Shown piece by piece: positions 420 to 62,696 of a stretch of DNA of 64,000 nt. How positions within the stretch are numbered: the stretch's first letter is position 1; each line of letters begins with the position of its first letter. The DNA is taken from positions 62,001-126,000 of the IMG/VR virus record IMGVR_UViG_3300029911_000001, one strand, 5' to 3'. The translations under genes were made by a program, and so were the position numbers. The notes below the pieces were generated by a model, which was not told the DNA's origin, did no database searches, and was given only the letters and a program-made list of their open reading frames with translations.

Positions 420-506
420 TGGTTGGGGAGGCAGGATTCGAACCTGCAATGAGCTTACGCTCGGGGGCTTCAAAGGCCCTTGACCTACCATTGGTACGAC
501 TCCCCA
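420..506 (-). tRNA. tRNA-Gln(UUG) with long variable arm
   Basis: Acceptor TGGGGAG/CTCCCCA-A-CCA; anticodon loop CT-TTG-AA; variable arm GAGC-GTAA-GCTC; T-arm GCAGG-TTCGAAT-CCTGC. Confidence 0.85.
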
Positions 507-511
507 ATAAC

Positions 512-745
512 TTATGCTGTGACCAAATCCTTCGGAGGCCACTCAAACTTCCAGTTGCTCCGCTCACGAATCTTGTTATCGCGAATGTTGTAGAACCCGG
601 CGTACGCTGCACACGTGATAGAGCAGAACACAGGATGACTCAGGTCGTCCGGCATCTCAACCATCTGAGGCCCACGTGGGGTGTCAGGGTCTTCGTGATG
701 ACGCCGATAATCTGCACAACCGGGTGCTGGACACGCAATCAACAT
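512..745 (-). CDS. Hypothetical Cys-containing protein
   Basis: 77-aa ORF packed between the ligase and the tRNA, with CxxxxC and CSITC motifs. Confidence 0.55.
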   Translation of the reverse strand: MLIACPAPGCADYRRHHEDPDTPRGPQMVEMPDDLSHPVFCSITCAAYAGFYNIRDNKIRERSNWKFEWPPKDLVTA

Positions 746-748
746 AGC

Positions 749-1348
749 TCACTCCCAGTACAGCCTATAGTTCGTTCCGTATACTTCGTTCAACTTCTTG
801 AAGAAGGCATCGGTCTTTATCTTGACCATGAAATCGTCACCCTTGGCGACGACGCCTTCCCACACTGGATACTTTCCGCTGCGGACATCATCAACGAACT
901 GCTTGTTGAGGTTGCCCTCGTAAACCACTTCAGCCGCGTATGGCAGGTCTCCGTACTGCTTGAGAAACTGCCGGGGCGACATCATCCCCTTCTTGAACAG
1001 GTACACATCGAACAAGCGAAGCTGCTTAGGCTCCCCCGGCGTATGCACACCCGCGAAACTTGAGTCCCCGAAGAACTCTGTGAAGACCGTGGTCCTCTGG
1101 CAGTTCCGGTCGTAGTCCTTCACCCGGCGAGTCAACTCATCTGCCATGGTATCCATGAAGACCGGAATCGCTTCACCGAAGACCGGGTTGCTCTTGTCGA
1201 ACAACTCATGTCGGGTACCAAACTTGAACCAACCCTTCTTGGGGTTCCACTCCCAACGAAGGTTCGAGCCATCGTACTTGTAGAAAGCGATGCACTGCTT
1301 ACCTAGAGGGGCTTTGGAACTTCCTTCGATACTTGGGTACTGCTCCAT
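749..1348 (-). CDS. RNA ligase (stand-alone adenylyltransferase domain, Rnl2/Rnl5-like)
   Basis: Nucleotidyltransferase motifs I KYDGSN, III EFFG, IIIa FDVY, IV EGVV, V KIK; AAAGGA RBS. Confidence 0.8.
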   Translation of the reverse strand: MEQYPSIEGSSKAPLGKQCIAFYKYDGSNLRWEWNPKKGWFKFGTRHELFDKSNPVFGEAIPVFMDTMADELTRRVKDYDRNCQRTTVFTEFFGDSSFAGVHTPGEPKQLRLFDVYLFKKGMMSPRQFLKQYGDLPYAAEVVYEGNLNKQFVDDVRSGKYPVWEGVVAKGDDFMVKIKTDAFFKKLNEVYGTNYRLYWE

Positions 1349-1398
1349 ACATCCCTTTCAATTTCTCCAATACCACTTCCATAATCAGGGAGTGGTTT

Positions 1399-1613
1399 AT
1401 GAAATGCCTTCAATGTGATACCGACACGAGTAATCCAAAGTTCTGCTCCAACAAGTGACCATATTGATGGAAATTACATGAACAACCATCGTAATAACTT
1501 GCGGTGCAACTGCCCAAACTGCGATATACAACTACCTACGTCAAAAGGGGAAGAACCGAGGCAACGGTAGGCATTGGCGTCGAGTTCGTTATGCGGAGGG
1601 TAAGTCCCGCTAA
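1399..1613 (+). pseudogene. Degenerate HNH endonuclease
   Basis: Three frame fragments: MKCLQCDTDTSNPKFCSNK*, DHIDGNYMNNHRNNLRCNCPNCDIQLPT, KNRGNGRHWRRVRYAEGKSR*. These match an HNH core with an internal deletion and frameshifts. Confidence 0.75.
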
Positions 1614-1616
1614 AAA

Positions 1617-1692
1617 TGGAGCCGGTTGAGGGACTCGAACCCTCTGCCTTTTGCTTACCAAGCAAATACACATCCATATATGCTTAACCGGC
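1617..1692 (-). tRNA. tRNA-Thr(GGU)
   Basis: Acceptor GCCGGTT/AACCGGC-T-CCA; anticodon arm TTTGC-TTGGTAA-GCAAA; T-loop TTCGAGT. Confidence 0.9.
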
Positions 1693-1698
1693 CTTTCT

Positions 1699-1902
1699 TT
1701 ACTTACAACAGCGACTAATCTGCTTATCAAGTTCCTGTGCAGTCTCGTGCGCTTTTTCAAAAAACTCATCAACATCTTCGGAGTAGGTGACTCCGTGAAG
1801 CAGAGCACGTCGCCGCTTGTCCTCTGCTACGTTGTGGCGAAGGTTCTCCAGCATCTGCTGAGCGATTGCTGCTGCGGCCTCATCCAAGTTTTCCATACTC
1901 AC
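1699..1902 (-). CDS. Hypothetical protein
   Basis: 67-aa helical ORF between two tRNA-Thr genes. Confidence 0.55.
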   Translation of the reverse strand: MSMENLDEAAAAIAQQMLENLRHNVAEDKRRRALLHGVTYSEDVDEFFEKAHETAQELDKQISRCCK

Positions 1903-1917
1903 CTAATACTGCGAAAC

Positions 1918-2000
1918 TGGAGCTAGGTGAGGGACTCGAACCCTCGGTGTTTGTATACCGCTTTACGAAAGCGGTGCCGTCGCCACTGAGCCAACCTAGC
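1918..2000 (-). tRNA. tRNA-Thr(CGU) with enlarged variable region
   Basis: Acceptor GCTAGGT/ACCTAGC-T-CCA; anticodon arm CCGCT-TTCGTAA-AGCGG; ~12-nt variable region TATACAAACACC. Confidence 0.9.
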
Positions 2001-2517
2001 CTAATGTAAATTCTTCGTCATGGGTTTCAAGATGGCAGTTGGCACAGAGGAGGTCGCACTTATCCAACTCCTTCATCAACCGAGCCCAAGCCCACGTCAT
2101 CTTCCCTGCGATGCTAAACTCCTTTTGTTCTGGGTCTCTATGGTGGAAACTTAGAACCCGCATTGACTTACAATATCCGCACGATTGGCACTTACCCCCT
2201 TTGTATTCAACACAACGTCTCTTTACCCGAGTCCGTTGCCTATTAGCAACACAAGAGTTGCATAAAGTCAGGGTGTGACCCTGCTTCTTGGCGAACACAT
2301 ACACCCTAAAACAACGGGTACAGATTAGTGAAGCACCTTCACGCTTTACACTTACAACGACAAGACTTCCATCGTCATCCCGGCGTAAAGACCGAGTGTT
2401 GTGTGCCCCGAACGGGGAGCAGACTAAGCAATACTTTCGACGTTGGAGGTTCCGTTCAACCCCGTCGATAACCACCGTGAGTGGTATGTCTGAGCTACAA
2501 AGTGTACAAGTTCTCAT
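1996..2517 (-). CDS. HNH homing endonuclease
   Basis: YKGGKCQSCGY...LSFHHRDP..KEF.I...ELDKCDLLCANCHLETH; inserted among tRNAs. Confidence 0.85.
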   Translation of the reverse strand: MRTCTLCSSDIPLTVVIDGVERNLQRRKYCLVCSPFGAHNTRSLRRDDDGSLVVVSVKREGASLICTRCFRVYVFAKKQGHTLTLCNSCVANRQRTRVKRRCVEYKGGKCQSCGYCKSMRVLSFHHRDPEQKEFSIAGKMTWAWARLMKELDKCDLLCANCHLETHDEEFTLG

Positions 2518-2573
2518 GTATCAGAACTCTATAGCTCAATTTTTATACTTACTTTTACTCTAACCCACTAAGC

Positions 2574-2648
2574 TGGTTGGCGAGGGGAATTTTGAAATCC
2601 CAACCTCATTCTTATCAGGAATGCGCTCTTCCTTTGAGCTACTCGCCA
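2574..2648 (-). tRNA. tRNA-Ile(GAU)
   Basis: Acceptor TGGCGAG/CTCGCCA-A-CCA; D-arm GCTC/GAGC; anticodon arm CATTC-CTGATAA-GAATG. Confidence 0.88.
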
Positions 2649-2650
2649 TT

Positions 2651-2727
2651 TGGTGTACCCGGAGGGACTCGAACCCCCGTAATGCTCAGTAATCGGCTGA
2701 GTGCCATAGCCACTAGGCGACGGGTAC
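2651..2727 (-). tRNA. tRNA with GAU anticodon (Ile) and atypical anticodon loop
   Basis: Acceptor GTACCCG/CGGGTAC-A-CCA; anticodon arm CTCAG-CCGATTA-CTGAG (C33, U37); T-arm GGGGG-TTCGAGT-CCCTC. Confidence 0.75.
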
Positions 2728-3080: not shown

Positions 3081-3311
3081 TTATCTCCCGTAACGAGCTT
3101 GTATCCCATCTATTACTCTGAGACAGCGGACTCTACGGCGGAGCCAGTTGCGTGCTGCGAATTTCTTTCCAGTGTTCTTGGGCAGGTTCAAGAGAAGAGA
3201 ATACTCGGAGGGGTCATAGCGGTGATAGCTGACACCGTACCCTCTCCCGCGAAACTCTAAAATTGCCCGGTTGCACCGTTCTGCTAACGTCATCTTTGCT
3301 GTGACTTTCAT
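3081..3311 (-). CDS. Hypothetical basic protein (first gene after the putative attenuator)
   Basis: Start moved to ATG 3311 (MKVTAKMTL) because of a GGAGAGGG RBS. Confidence 0.6.
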   Translation of the reverse strand: MKVTAKMTLAERCNRAILEFRGRGYGVSYHRYDPSEYSLLLNLPKNTGKKFAARNWLRRRVRCLRVIDGIQARYGR

Positions 3312-3320
3312 ACCCTCTCC

Positions 3321-3350
3321 AAAACACCAAAGCCGCCCTGTTGGGCGGCT
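3321..3350 (-). terminator. Intrinsic terminator of the putative attenuator
   Basis: AGCCGCCC-AACA-GGGCGGCT followed by TTGGTGTTTT (imperfect U-tract). Confidence 0.65.
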
Positions 3351-3377
3351 CGTATACATCGAAGAATTTTTGACTGG

Positions 3378-3464
3378 TTAGTCTTCAATCCCTCCGCACA
3401 CGAAGCCGCAGACGCTGGTTTGCGTTGTGGTAGTTGTAATTCGTGTTTGAGCGGAAAGACGCAT
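3378..3464 (-). CDS. Thr/Ile-rich leader peptide (28 aa, thrL-like)
   Basis: MRLSAQTRITTTTTQTSVCGFVCGGIED*; the run ATT ACA ACT ACC ACA ACG uses all four Thr codons; the 3' half can pair with the terminator 5' arm. Confidence 0.7.
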   Translation of the reverse strand: MRLSAQTRITTTTTQTSVCGFVCGGIED

Positions 3465-3493
3465 TTTCAGAATCCGGTATTCCTATGGTATTT

Positions 3494-3633
3494 TGGTGCC
3501 GGAGGACAGGTTGCCCTATCACTCCGGCTTGGAGCCCTATCCAAGTTTGACCTCAGGTAGGGCATGGCCCGGAAGGTAAATTTTACTTTACCTCCCAGAT
3601 GGTGGCTGAACTAAGGTCTCCCTCAGTCCAACC
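3494..3633 (-). ncRNA. Array of four tRNA-minihelix-like RNAs, each ending in NCCA
   Basis: Units 3600-3633, 3565-3598, 3530-3563 and 3494-3528; 11-13-bp hairpins plus discriminator plus CCA; 1-nt spacers. Confidence 0.8.
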
Positions 3634-3643
3634 GTCTACATAC

Positions 3644-3673
3644 ATAATACACACAAAGTCAGAAAAGTGAACA
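3644..3673 (-). promoter_or_regulatory. Putative promoter for the minihelix/attenuator/tRNA transcript
   Basis: TGTTCA-N18-TATTAT, same spacing as the other copies in the window. Confidence 0.65.
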
Positions 3674-3738
3674 CTTATTTTTGAATTATTCGGAAATATT
3701 ATTCTGGCAGTGCTCCCGGATGATTTTGATGGCATCTT

Positions 3739-5322: not shown

Positions 5323-5396
5323 TGGTGCTCCCGGCAGGGTTCGAACCCGCGTCTCTTAGGTTAGAGCTAAGGGCACAGCCGCTATACCACGGGAGC
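5323..5396 (-). tRNA. Amber-suppressor tRNA (anticodon CUA)
   Basis: Acceptor GCTCCCG/CGGGAGC-A-CCA; D-arm GTAT/GTGC; anticodon arm CTTAG-CTCTAAC-CTAAG; T-arm GCGGG-TTCGAAC-CCTGC. Confidence 0.88.
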
Positions 5397-61515: not shown

Positions 61516-62696
61516 TAGGGGTACACATAGGACGTGGGTGCAAATATGTATTGCATCTGTCCTTGACTGGTGGAAGCCAACGGGTTGGTGAACGGATTCA
61601 ACTCATCGTTGGTAGAAGCTACAACCGAAGGTGAATCCGCATAGGGGTTGTTAGCGAGGTTGCTAGTAGCAGCGGCTGTAGTTGAGGCAGTCGATGGGAC
61701 TGTCTGCTGAGACAAGGTGTTGTTCACCGTGCTCTGACCTGTGGTTCCCATCACAGCCGGGTAGCTGTGCCCTCTCTGAATGTTGTTGTGCTTGCTGTCC
61801 CAGTAACCAGAACTATCCCGGTAACGCTCCTTCCATGCAATAAAGGTCAACTCAAAATCAATCAGGAAGGGGTTATCGGCATTCTGAGAAATACCCATGG
61901 ACTCGAACATCCCAGACCAGATGAAGTTACCGACCCACAGGTCGATGTCTTGGTGCATACGAATACGACGGCGTAGGAAATCGGTCGCCAGCGGACCTTC
62001 GTTGAATTCCTCCCCCTCAAACCAATACCCATTATTCTCATAAACCTGCAACAATTGCATCAGGTTACGGTAGGATTCAGCGTAGAACTTAAACTCATCC
62101 GTGAGACCGAGAGCGAAGTAGGAACCCGCTGTCTGTCCTGATATACGAATAGAGGATACGTCCTCCCCCCACACACCGAACTGCCAGCCTCCTCGTGTAA
62201 CCGCCTGAGTATCCACTGTCTGCTTACTCACCTCGATGGTTTTGGGGTTGATAAGGAACGTGAACTCCGCATCCTGAGTAGGATCAAACACCCCTGTGGT
62301 GGGTATTACTCCCCGATGTGGGATGCGAATTTTCACGTAATCAGTGAGATTTTTGTTGGCACCAGTCACAAAAAAATCCCTGTTGGTGATTTGATGTGAG
62401 GTCATGACGCTGTTGCCCCTCGCATCCGTGGTTGCGGAAGCGTTGATGAACACTGCTTGAATGACGTTTAGGTCTATGCTGCTGGGAATAAACCGCTTCT
62501 CAGCACGTATGGGCAGGTTGCCTGTAAGACTGGCGTCACTGAGGTTGTTAACCGCAGGTAACACCGGCGTCGATATCATGGAAGTAGTTGGAGCAGCGTC
62601 GATTGTATCAAACGGAGGATCGGGTTGAGCCGTCACAGTCACGTTGGTGGTTTGTGTGTTCGTCGCCGGATTGAAGTTTTCAGATGTAATTGCCAT
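61515..62696 (-). CDS. Putative tail tube initiator / baseplate protein
   Basis: FLINPKTI.....TRGGW...WGED...I.ISGQT...G.FES..I...A.NPF..DFELTF. Confidence 0.6.
   Translation of the reverse strand: MAITSENFNPATNTQTTNVTVTAQPDPPFDTIDAAPTTSMISTPVLPAVNNLSDASLTGNLPIRAEKRFIPSSIDLNVIQAVFINASATTDARGNSVMTSHQITNRDFFVTGANKNLTDYVKIRIPHRGVIPTTGVFDPTQDAEFTFLINPKTIEVSKQTVDTQAVTRGGWQFGVWGEDVSSIRISGQTAGSYFALGLTDEFKFYAESYRNLMQLLQVYENNGYWFEGEEFNEGPLATDFLRRRIRMHQDIDLWVGNFIWSGMFESMGISQNADNPFLIDFELTFIAWKERYRDSSGYWDSKHNNIQRGHSYPAVMGTTGQSTVNNTLSQQTVPSTASTTAAATSNLANNPYADSPSVVASTNDELNPFTNPLASTSQGQMQYIFAPTSYVYP

Follow-up and report, generated by a model that had tools for sequence, protein, structure and literature searches.

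The array and its transcript

The stretch of DNA analyzed here (the window) comprises 64,000 nucleotides (nt), positions 62,001 to 126,000 of the IMG/VR virus record IMGVR_UViG_3300029911_000001, and carries on its minus strand a tandem array of four short hairpins, each followed by one unpaired nucleotide and CCA, in the geometry of a tRNA minihelix. The source is an uncultured megaphage known from peat and bog metagenomes, with IMG/VR contigs of up to 231 kb and a longest JGI contig of 431 kb. The phage has myovirus-type structural genes, and an Acidobacteria jumbo phage is its only distant relative in culture. A translation island with a single orientation takes up the first 10 kb of the window. 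Within this island, the array lies between a promoter and a short leader open reading frame (ORF), which is followed by a predicted antiterminator and terminator, a DUF6915 gene and a cluster of tRNA genes (Table 1).

Table 1. Coordinates of the array, of the leader elements and of homologous arrays (window positions unless a contig is named; lineages A to F are related phages, A being that of the window)
Feature	Position	Strand	Description
Minihelix unit 1	3600-3633	(-)	13 bp, GAGA loop, A73, CCA; 34 nt; orthologues in L007, L114, L117
Minihelix unit 2	3565-3598	(-)	12 bp, GUAAAA loop, G73, CCA; 34 nt
Minihelix unit 3	3530-3563	(-)	6 bp + C·A mismatch + 5 bp, 6-nt loop, U73, CCA; 34 nt
Minihelix unit 4	3494-3528	(-)	7 bp + bulged U + 6 bp, GCAA loop, A73, CCA; 35 nt
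Sigma-70-like promoter	3644-3671	(-)	-35 TTCACT 3671-3666, 16-nt spacer, -10 TATTAT 3649-3644
Leader ORF, 28 amino acids (MRLSAQTRITTTTTQTSVCGFVCGGIED)	3378-3464	(-)	Rich in Thr, Ile and Gln codons; begins ~30 nt past unit 4
Predicted antiterminator	3345-3409	(-)	Long helix, base GCGGC..:..GCCGC, sequesters the 5' arm of the terminator; in all five lineages tested
Intrinsic terminator	3320-3351	(-)	9-bp G+C-rich stem, then U-rich tail
Downstream tRNA cluster	420-2727	(-)	tRNA-Ile(GAU) x2, Thr(CGU), Thr(GGU), Gln(UUG)
Array, lineage A	3633-3494	(-)	4 units
Array, lineage B	L007 1031-1171		4 units
Array, lineage C	L114 3425-3564 (= L115, L116)		4 units
Array, lineage D	L117 5664-5805		4 units
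Array, lineage F	L123 4785-4610		5 units (34, 34, 34, 34, 36 nt)
Leader, lineage A	3464-3320	(-)	
Leader, lineage B	L007 1230-1375		
Leader, lineage C	L114 3599-3740		
Leader, lineage D	L117 5842-5985		
Leader, lineage E	L109 7852-7990		No array
Leader, lineage F	L123	(-)	

The array consists of four hairpins of 11-13 base pairs (bp), with N-CCA after each. An earlier note on this DNA had placed the four units on the minus strand, with 1-nt spacers, discriminators A, G, U and A, and a start about 10 nt after a -10 box; these coordinates and assignments were found to be exact, the spacers being U, U and A and the array starting 10 nt past the -10 box. The array was folded by RNAfold into four independent hairpins (-81.3 kcal/mol, z = -8.2), and none of 200 dinucleotide shuffles was observed to fold as well. 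The fold of the sense strand (-80.3 kcal/mol) is 28 kcal/mol stronger than that of the antisense strand (-52.7 kcal/mol), and 9 of the 50 pairs are G·U. These G·U pairs and the weaker antisense fold indicate that the structure belongs to the minus-strand RNA and not to the DNA.

A structure descriptor was used that calls for a helix of at least 11 bp built from the ends inward, in which a single mismatch or bulge is tolerated, closed by a loop of 3-9 nt and followed by N-CCA. On both strands of the window it returned 12 matches, of which four are the array and the rest are scattered. Shuffled sequences, which the earlier note had named as a control, did not produce arrays: 40 dinucleotide shuffles of the window gave 6.95 ± 1.9 single matches each and no adjacent pair. 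Another 617 kb from unrelated viral loci, amounting to about 1.2 Mb of strand sequence, likewise contained no adjacent pair, even when helices of 10 bp were allowed. The expectation that tRNA and repeat finders would miss the array was likewise borne out. ARAGORN reported six tRNAs and a transfer-messenger RNA (tmRNA) in the window and nothing at 3494-3633, a scan with Rfam 15 at E≤1 gave no match within 3300-3700 with the tRNA model included, and Tandem Repeats Finder was silent on the array region.

Homologous arrays and compensatory changes

Divergent arrays were reached through two anchors, namely the neighbouring proteins and the conserved leader. The array itself was found to be identical on dozens of strain-level copies. 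A blastn search with 601 nt against 50,697 phage records gave no match, and searches with the neighbouring proteins in IMG/VR returned identical copies only. The upstream 213-amino-acid protein has one distant relative among 5.8 billion proteins, and this relative led to lineage B. A pattern made of the core described below plus CCA found lineage F alone. In all, arrays are present in five lineages (Table 1), whose flanking proteins are 63-79% identical between lineages.

Across these lineages, CCA is unchanged in 21 of 21 units. The discriminators of the 21 units are A (11), U (6) and G (4), with no C, and N73 differs between lineages for each orthologous unit (A/U, G/A, U/A, A/U). The spacers are 1-3 nt of A or U. 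Unit length is kept at 34-36 nt by compensating indels; for example, unit 3 is built as 12 + 6 + 12 in lineage A and as 13 + 4 + 13 (13 bp, GAAA loop) in lineages B-D, with 34 nt in both. RNAalifold of the four-lineage alignment gave a structure of 51 pairs; 96.6% of its cells are paired, and double compensatory changes occur at 13 of the pairs. Column shuffles gave 5.7 ± 1.6 double-change pairs, with none of 500 reaching 13, and shifting the 3' partner by 1-3 columns left 0-4. In unit 2, double compensatory changes affect 6 of the 12 pairs. Across the alignment, one-sided changes in pairs run from G-C to G-U. Homologous arrays with compensatory changes, for which the earlier note had suggested a covariation analysis, thus exist, and the tRNA-minihelix geometry with NCCA that it had read from a single array was confirmed in five lineages, as helix and loop followed by NCCA, with compensatory changes and an invariant CCA. 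Overall, the array is a selected, strand-specific RNA structure with tRNA-minihelix geometry.

The statement that the units share no primary sequence was found to be incorrect for units 1 and 3. These two units, as well as units 1-3 of lineage F, have a common inner core, YUGAGG-GNAA-CCUURG, and are therefore paralogues with diverged outer stems. Among the outer seven, acceptor-like pairs in lineages A-D, 13 are invariant, 6 are variable on one side, 9 co-vary and 1 contains a mismatch. Lineages B and D are identical at units 1, 2 and 4 and differ at unit 3, which points to unit exchange. Unit 4 has the same outer stem, GCCGGAG, throughout lineages A-D. The proposal that the units carry different acceptor identities is weakened by these data, since the discriminators and outer pairs of units 1-3 change between close relatives. 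Diversified outer stems, a retained inner core and the exchange of unit 3 form a pattern expected of specificity-bearing surfaces.

How closely do the units resemble a tRNA acceptor arm? A canonical cloverleaf, with D arm, anticodon arm and a T arm with T-loop, is absent, the fold being four simple hairpins. The helix of a minihelix, of about 12 bp (7 + 5) and closed by a loop, has its counterpart in all 21 units, with 11-14 bp; helix and loop together measure 30-32 nt, compared with 31 in tRNA. A single unpaired discriminator and then CCA follow in all units. The loops are GNRA tetraloops or NUAAAA, and not the T-loop (UUCRANY). Substrates of bacterial RNase P have an acceptor-like helix, a 3' RCCA able to pair with the P15 loop and a 5' leader to be removed; of the sequence features that such a substrate would need, the units show the helix, NCCA and, in many cases, a U at position -1. 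The U(-1) of unit 2 is able to pair with N73, and this pair co-varies (U·G in lineages A and C, U-A in lineages B and D), so that unit 2 may present a 13-bp helix with CCA alone unpaired.

Synthetic tRNA minihelices have the same continuous helix of 12-13 bp, closing loop, unpaired discriminator and CCA, and are canonically 35 nt long, compared with 34-36 nt here. However, they are laboratory constructs cut from real tRNAs and carry the 7-nt T-loop, whereas the array units are natural tandem genes with GNRA or NUAAAA loops. Unlike synthetic minihelices, the units have no parent tRNA of matching sequence in the phage. Comparison of the minihelix stems with the acceptor stems of the phage's own tRNAs gave partial resemblances, such as GCCGG in both unit 4 and tRNA-Thr(GGU), and nothing consistent across lineages.

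The known distribution of the array is narrow. The hairpin pattern of unit 4 gave 74 matches in viral contigs, and apart from the same phage all of these are isolated hairpins. A scan with the leader pattern recovered the same phage alone. The pattern of the junction between units 3 and 4 matched identical copies and one chance sequence in metagenome contigs, and four chance sequences in G+C-rich coding repeats of GTDB genomes. More distant DUF6915 homologues (L110-L113 and L118-L122) were found to have neither leader nor array. Thus, viral, metagenome and genome scans with exact patterns, which reach close relatives, located no array outside this clade of peat-soil megaphages; because such scans need exact matches, unrelated arrays of different sequence would be missed.

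The adjoining leader and its tRNA genes

The leader transcript of a tRNA operon has the array as its 5' part, which makes up the first 140 nt. The array described in the earlier note is real, and what was missed is the larger unit to which it belongs, the leader of a phage tRNA operon under putative attenuator control. The -35 and -10 boxes and a distance of 8-10 nt to unit 1 are kept in six lineages. The leader ORF is kept in all five array lineages and in a sixth, lineage E (L109). It varies mostly at the third positions of Thr codons, with one in-frame 3-nt indel, and in each of the six lineages its core (QTRITTTTQTSV) uses all four Thr codons together with AUU and CAA. These core codons are exactly those read by the downstream phage tRNAs wherever downstream sequence is available. 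In every such lineage the leader is followed by tRNA-Ile(GAU), tRNA-Thr(CGU) and tRNA-Thr(GGU), and, wherever the contig reaches, by tRNA-Thr(UGU) and tRNA-Gln(UUG).

The antiterminator and terminator folds were predicted to lie ~1-5 kcal/mol apart in the five lineages folded, and segments of the antiterminator are also visible in lineage F. When the RNA was masked up to the stop codon, the terminator alone remained. At the sequence level the leader thus shows an ORF with regulatory codons, alternative folds, and an overlap of the ORF with the 5' arm of the antiterminator, and it looks like a ribosome-mediated attenuator of the phage tRNA(Ile/Thr/Gln) operon. With the thr, his, leu and phe leaders of amino-acid operons it shares a short ORF with a run of regulatory codons (here 5-6 Thr codons, with Ile and Gln codons as well), antiterminator and terminator helices that exclude each other, and a stop codon that falls within the antiterminator. 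It differs from them in being phage-encoded, in preceding tRNA genes that read the codons of the leader rather than biosynthetic genes, and in having the minihelix array at its 5' end.

Lineages A-D also keep the sequence that follows the last unit (AAAUACCAUA...GGAUUCUGAA-AUG). In lineage E the promoter, down to ...GTATTATATATGTAGAC, and the attenuator are the same, and a hydrophobic ORF of 41 amino acids between them replaces the hairpins. As lineage E keeps both elements without hairpins, attenuation does not need the array; the array is instead swappable cargo in a variable slot at the 5' end of the leader. The ORF that occupies this slot in lineage E (L109 7718-7843; MLPYIDAFLHDRQTFEAAILTLGLVLSLVALAWFMVKIDDH) has no family match.

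A DUF6915 gene follows the attenuator in all relatives and is frameshifted in the window (3078-2733, minus strand), where its N-terminal 39 codons lie in one frame and the called ORF of 88 amino acids in another. The protein of the downstream frame is recorded on 23 contigs, and either a pseudogene or a programmed shift is possible. The window has in addition an ORF of 76 amino acids (3311-3081, minus strand) between the terminator and the DUF6915 gene, which has no family match and is absent in lineages B, C, D, E and F.

The tRNA-Thr(UGU) gene lies just outside the start of the window, so that the phage has three tRNA-Thr isoacceptors. All six tRNA genes inside the window encode CCA; tRNA-Thr(UGU) beyond it does not. 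The two tRNA-Ile genes are 2 nt apart, and tRNA-type processing at such spacing of CCA-encoding genes is therefore already required in the phage. The tRNA-Thr genes with anticodons CGU and UGU (window 1918-2000, minus strand, and L008 14690-14771) have an unusual variable region of ~12 nt (AUACAAACACC), which recurs in several unrelated viral contigs (L102, L103 and L105-L108). The pattern search for this region returned six unrelated phage contigs with tRNA clusters; none carries an array and none is homologous to the window. On one contig of 46 kb (L105/L106), Thr(UGU), Thr(CGU) and Thr(GGU) form a compact group of three, and complete tRNA-Thr sets seem to be a recurrent phage module. The tRNA-Gln(UUG) gene (420-506, minus strand) is 87 nt long with a long extra arm, and in its lineage C homologue (L114 6189-6276) ARAGORN reads a four-base anticodon (UGAA).

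Several further genes for translation lie nearby. A permuted, two-piece tmRNA (9374-9774, minus strand; tag ANSNVALPIAA) and an amber-suppressor tRNA(CUA) (5323-5396, minus strand) are kept in related lineages; the tmRNA tag of lineage C is AAPMALAMAA, and lineage D has two CUA tRNAs. An HNH endonuclease gene (1996-2517, minus strand) overlaps the start of tRNA-Thr(CGU) with the last bases of its ORF, and an RNA-ligase-like gene (749-1348, minus strand) stands among the tRNA genes. Beyond the start of the window, a gene resembling peptidyl-tRNA hydrolase PTH2 (L008 13998-14405) was matched weakly, with E about 0.003, below the curated cutoff. Family searches with the neighbouring proteins mostly gave no matches.

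Possible functions and significance

What might the units do? The reading that we favour, tentatively and at less than even probability, is that they form a functional noncoding RNA module, excised in the manner of tRNAs, whose members serve as acceptor-arm decoys for host defence enzymes that are directed at the CCA end or bind tRNA. In such a mechanism, a constitutive promoter would drive transcription of the array at the front of the leader of the tRNA(Ile/Thr/Gln) operon, ahead of the attenuator. RNase P would cut 5' of each helix, and 3' trimming by exonucleases would remove the 1-2-nt spacers, a route proposed because the phage's own CCA-encoding tRNAs are equally tightly spaced. Each transcript would thereby release four or five CCA-ended hairpins of ~34 nt, even if the attenuator terminates. 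The free minihelices would work in trans, either as decoys or as competitors that cannot be cleaved, against host factors docking on the acceptor arm or the CCA end, such as anti-phage tRNA toxins (toxSAS and MenT/AbiEii-type) or tRNases that need the missing anticodon arm, and the diversified outer stems would cover different specificities. As judged from the structure and codons of the leader, a persisting shortage of charged Thr-, Ile- or Gln-tRNA would stall ribosomes in the leader ORF, so that the antiterminator would form and transcription would read through into the DUF6915 gene and the replacement tRNA genes.

Several observations can be set beside the decoy proposal. For the toxSAS enzyme FaRel2, minihelices are substrates in vitro, with the determinants G1-C72, C2-G71, G4-C69 and Pu5-Py68 (PMC11559606). 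Unit 4 (G1-C72, C2-G71, G4-C69, G5-C68) has all four in lineages A-D, and units 1-3 do not. This agreement is a matter of compatibility only; the same pattern is simply like that of tRNA-Thr or tRNA-Gly. tRNA-Thr is a recurrent target of defence nucleases and is rescued by phage tRNA-Thr (PMC12445682, PMC12409363). The swappable slot, with different cargo in lineage E, is typical of accessory or counter-defence loci. The island around the array, which could serve translation rescue with its tRNAs, amber suppressor, tmRNA, ligase-like gene and PTH2-like gene, supports the decoy proposal.

Known systems provide partial precedents. Phage tRNA clusters, including the small stable RNAs of the T4 cluster, are polycistronic, tightly spaced and tRNA-like, with encoded CCA, and are presumably dependent on RNase P. 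The array is likewise tightly spaced with encoded CCA, and shares both region and orientation with six tRNA genes of the phage; unlike the tRNAs of such clusters, its units cannot decode, because they are without D arm, anticodon arm and T-loop. Natural tRNA-like RNAs (the 3' tRNA-like structures of plant viruses, mascRNA/menRNA, the tRNA-like domain of tmRNA, YrlA and skipping-rope RNA) also imitate part of a tRNA, and several are released by RNase P and carry or receive CCA. However, these RNAs are L-shaped with an elbow and usually occur as a single copy, whereas the array units are plain helices without an elbow, four or five in tandem and each different. RNA anti-CRISPRs are repeat mimics in mini-arrays, that is, short structured RNAs encoded by phages that copy the handle of a host immune enzyme. 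The concept would be the same here, with the tRNA acceptor end as the handle instead of the CRISPR repeat, although decoy action of the array is hypothetical. Literature searches for natural minihelix arrays, for phage tRNA mimics or decoys and for attenuators of phage tRNA operons found nothing pertinent.

Other explanations have to be weighed against decoys. It is unlikely, though worth serious consideration, that the array is a module of the leader acting in cis, with no role in trans: the units could be RNase P entry sites that fix the 5' end, a 5' stabilizer against RNase E or 5'-end-dependent decay, or a Rho-resistant spacer that times ribosome loading. A hairpin followed by RCCA is the classic minimal substrate of RNase P, the promoter and the leader ORF that flank the array are always the same in the five lineages that carry it, and the conservation after the last unit in lineages A-D also fits. 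However, lineage E uses promoter and attenuator without any hairpin, and one hairpin would suffice for stabilization or end definition, yet four or five distinct units are retained; nor does a spacer or stabilizer need an invariant CCA per unit or a ruler of 12-13 bp. The units might alternatively be a sink or modulator for housekeeping partners of tRNA ends (RNase P, CCA-adding enzyme, 3' exonucleases, EF-Tu and the ribosomal CCA sites), titrating these and so shifting host tRNA maturation or translation in favour of the phage. Enzymes of this kind are known to take minihelices as substrates or ligands, and partners that read geometry and CCA would fit the strict conservation of shape and CCA alone while most stem sequence drifts. 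This possibility is nevertheless rather improbable, as the phage needs the same enzymes for its many tRNAs and tmRNA, and as the invariant outer stem of unit 4 and the swapping of units point to some sequence-specific reading.

That the units are mini-acceptors charged by synthetases, as donors for an aminoacyl-tRNA-dependent transferase or as a means of titrating the threonyl-, isoleucyl- and glutaminyl-tRNA synthetases and so biasing the attenuator, is quite improbable. Some synthetases do charge minihelices, the array is physically linked to a leader of Thr, Ile and Gln codons, and units 3 and 4 carry G1-C72 and C2-G71 like all tRNA-Thr of the phage. Against these links stands the discriminator, a major identity element, which changes in every orthologous unit; the three synthetases rely strongly on the anticodon, which the units lack, and no aminoacyl-tRNA-dependent transferase was seen among the nearby genes. 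The best minihelix identities, G3·U70 for Ala and C73 for His, occur in none of the units, and an Ala- or His-type identity was accordingly rejected. Decayed tRNA genes or a chance run of hairpins, both functionless, would account for the position within a tRNA cluster, since phage tRNA regions accumulate pseudogenes. This account is scarcely credible, being effectively refuted by the compensatory changes, the invariant CCA, and the unit length and number kept at 63-79% flanking identity; moreover, the loops are engineered-looking GNRA tetraloops and not T-loop remnants, and shuffles never yield two adjacent units. An element acting as DNA, with hairpins extruded in single strands as an origin, primosome site or hairpin promoter, is suggested by tandem inverted repeats beside a promoter and has the lowest probability of all. 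It is disfavoured because the nine G·U pairs of 50 become A·C on the other strand, where the fold is weaker by 28 kcal/mol; in addition, one-sided changes run from G-C to G-U, and a conserved single-stranded CCA would be meaningless for DNA hairpins.

The decoy proposal itself faces a number of difficulties. Every array comes from an uncultured metagenome contig and is known from sequence alone, and the array is confined to one small clade in pattern scans that reach close relatives. Because the loops are GNRA or NUAAAA and not T-loops, recognition that depends on the elbow, as by RNase P, the CCA-adding enzyme and modification enzymes, would be weak. Against an enzyme of multiple turnover, a decoy substrate gives little protection unless it is very abundant or is bound without turnover. 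The discriminators and first pairs of units 1-3 differ between close relatives, and hence no fixed set of host tRNAs is mimicked; the decoy reading is also tied to no particular toxin or target. Finally, the array is seen only fused to one leader, and a cis role fits this arrangement equally well.

A still more tentative, rather doubtful extension of the decoy reading takes array and attenuator together as an undescribed two-tier, RNA-only counter-defence cassette. Constitutive, diversified acceptor-arm decoys would form its first tier, and the second would be an attenuator that senses the loss of charged Thr-, Ile- or Gln-tRNA and induces replacement tRNAs.

What does such an array mean for phage biology? 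For more than 30 years minihelices have served as a construct in the laboratory and in origin-of-life research, and literature searches turned up no genome reported to encode them as such. The units are probably tRNA-end mimics of an undescribed kind, and there is a substantial chance that with this array a new class of trans-acting tRNA-end mimic has its first example. That such an array occurs naturally and is conserved shows that selection can act on the bare acceptor arm with CCA as a functional unit; the array also offers a handle on which cellular or immune factors read only the acceptor end of a tRNA. Should the units prove to be decoys, they would represent an RNA-based response to tRNA-directed anti-phage systems, of which more and more are known, and would also be a ready-made inhibitor tool. 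If the two-tier reading is true, trans-acting tRNA mimics would gain a new class in natural, stand-alone minihelices. As far as the literature was searched, the linked attenuator would be the first instance in which a virus controls its own tRNA genes by sensing how exactly those codons are decoded that the tRNAs read. At this locus, the old question of what phages gain from carrying tRNAs would thereby become open to direct test.

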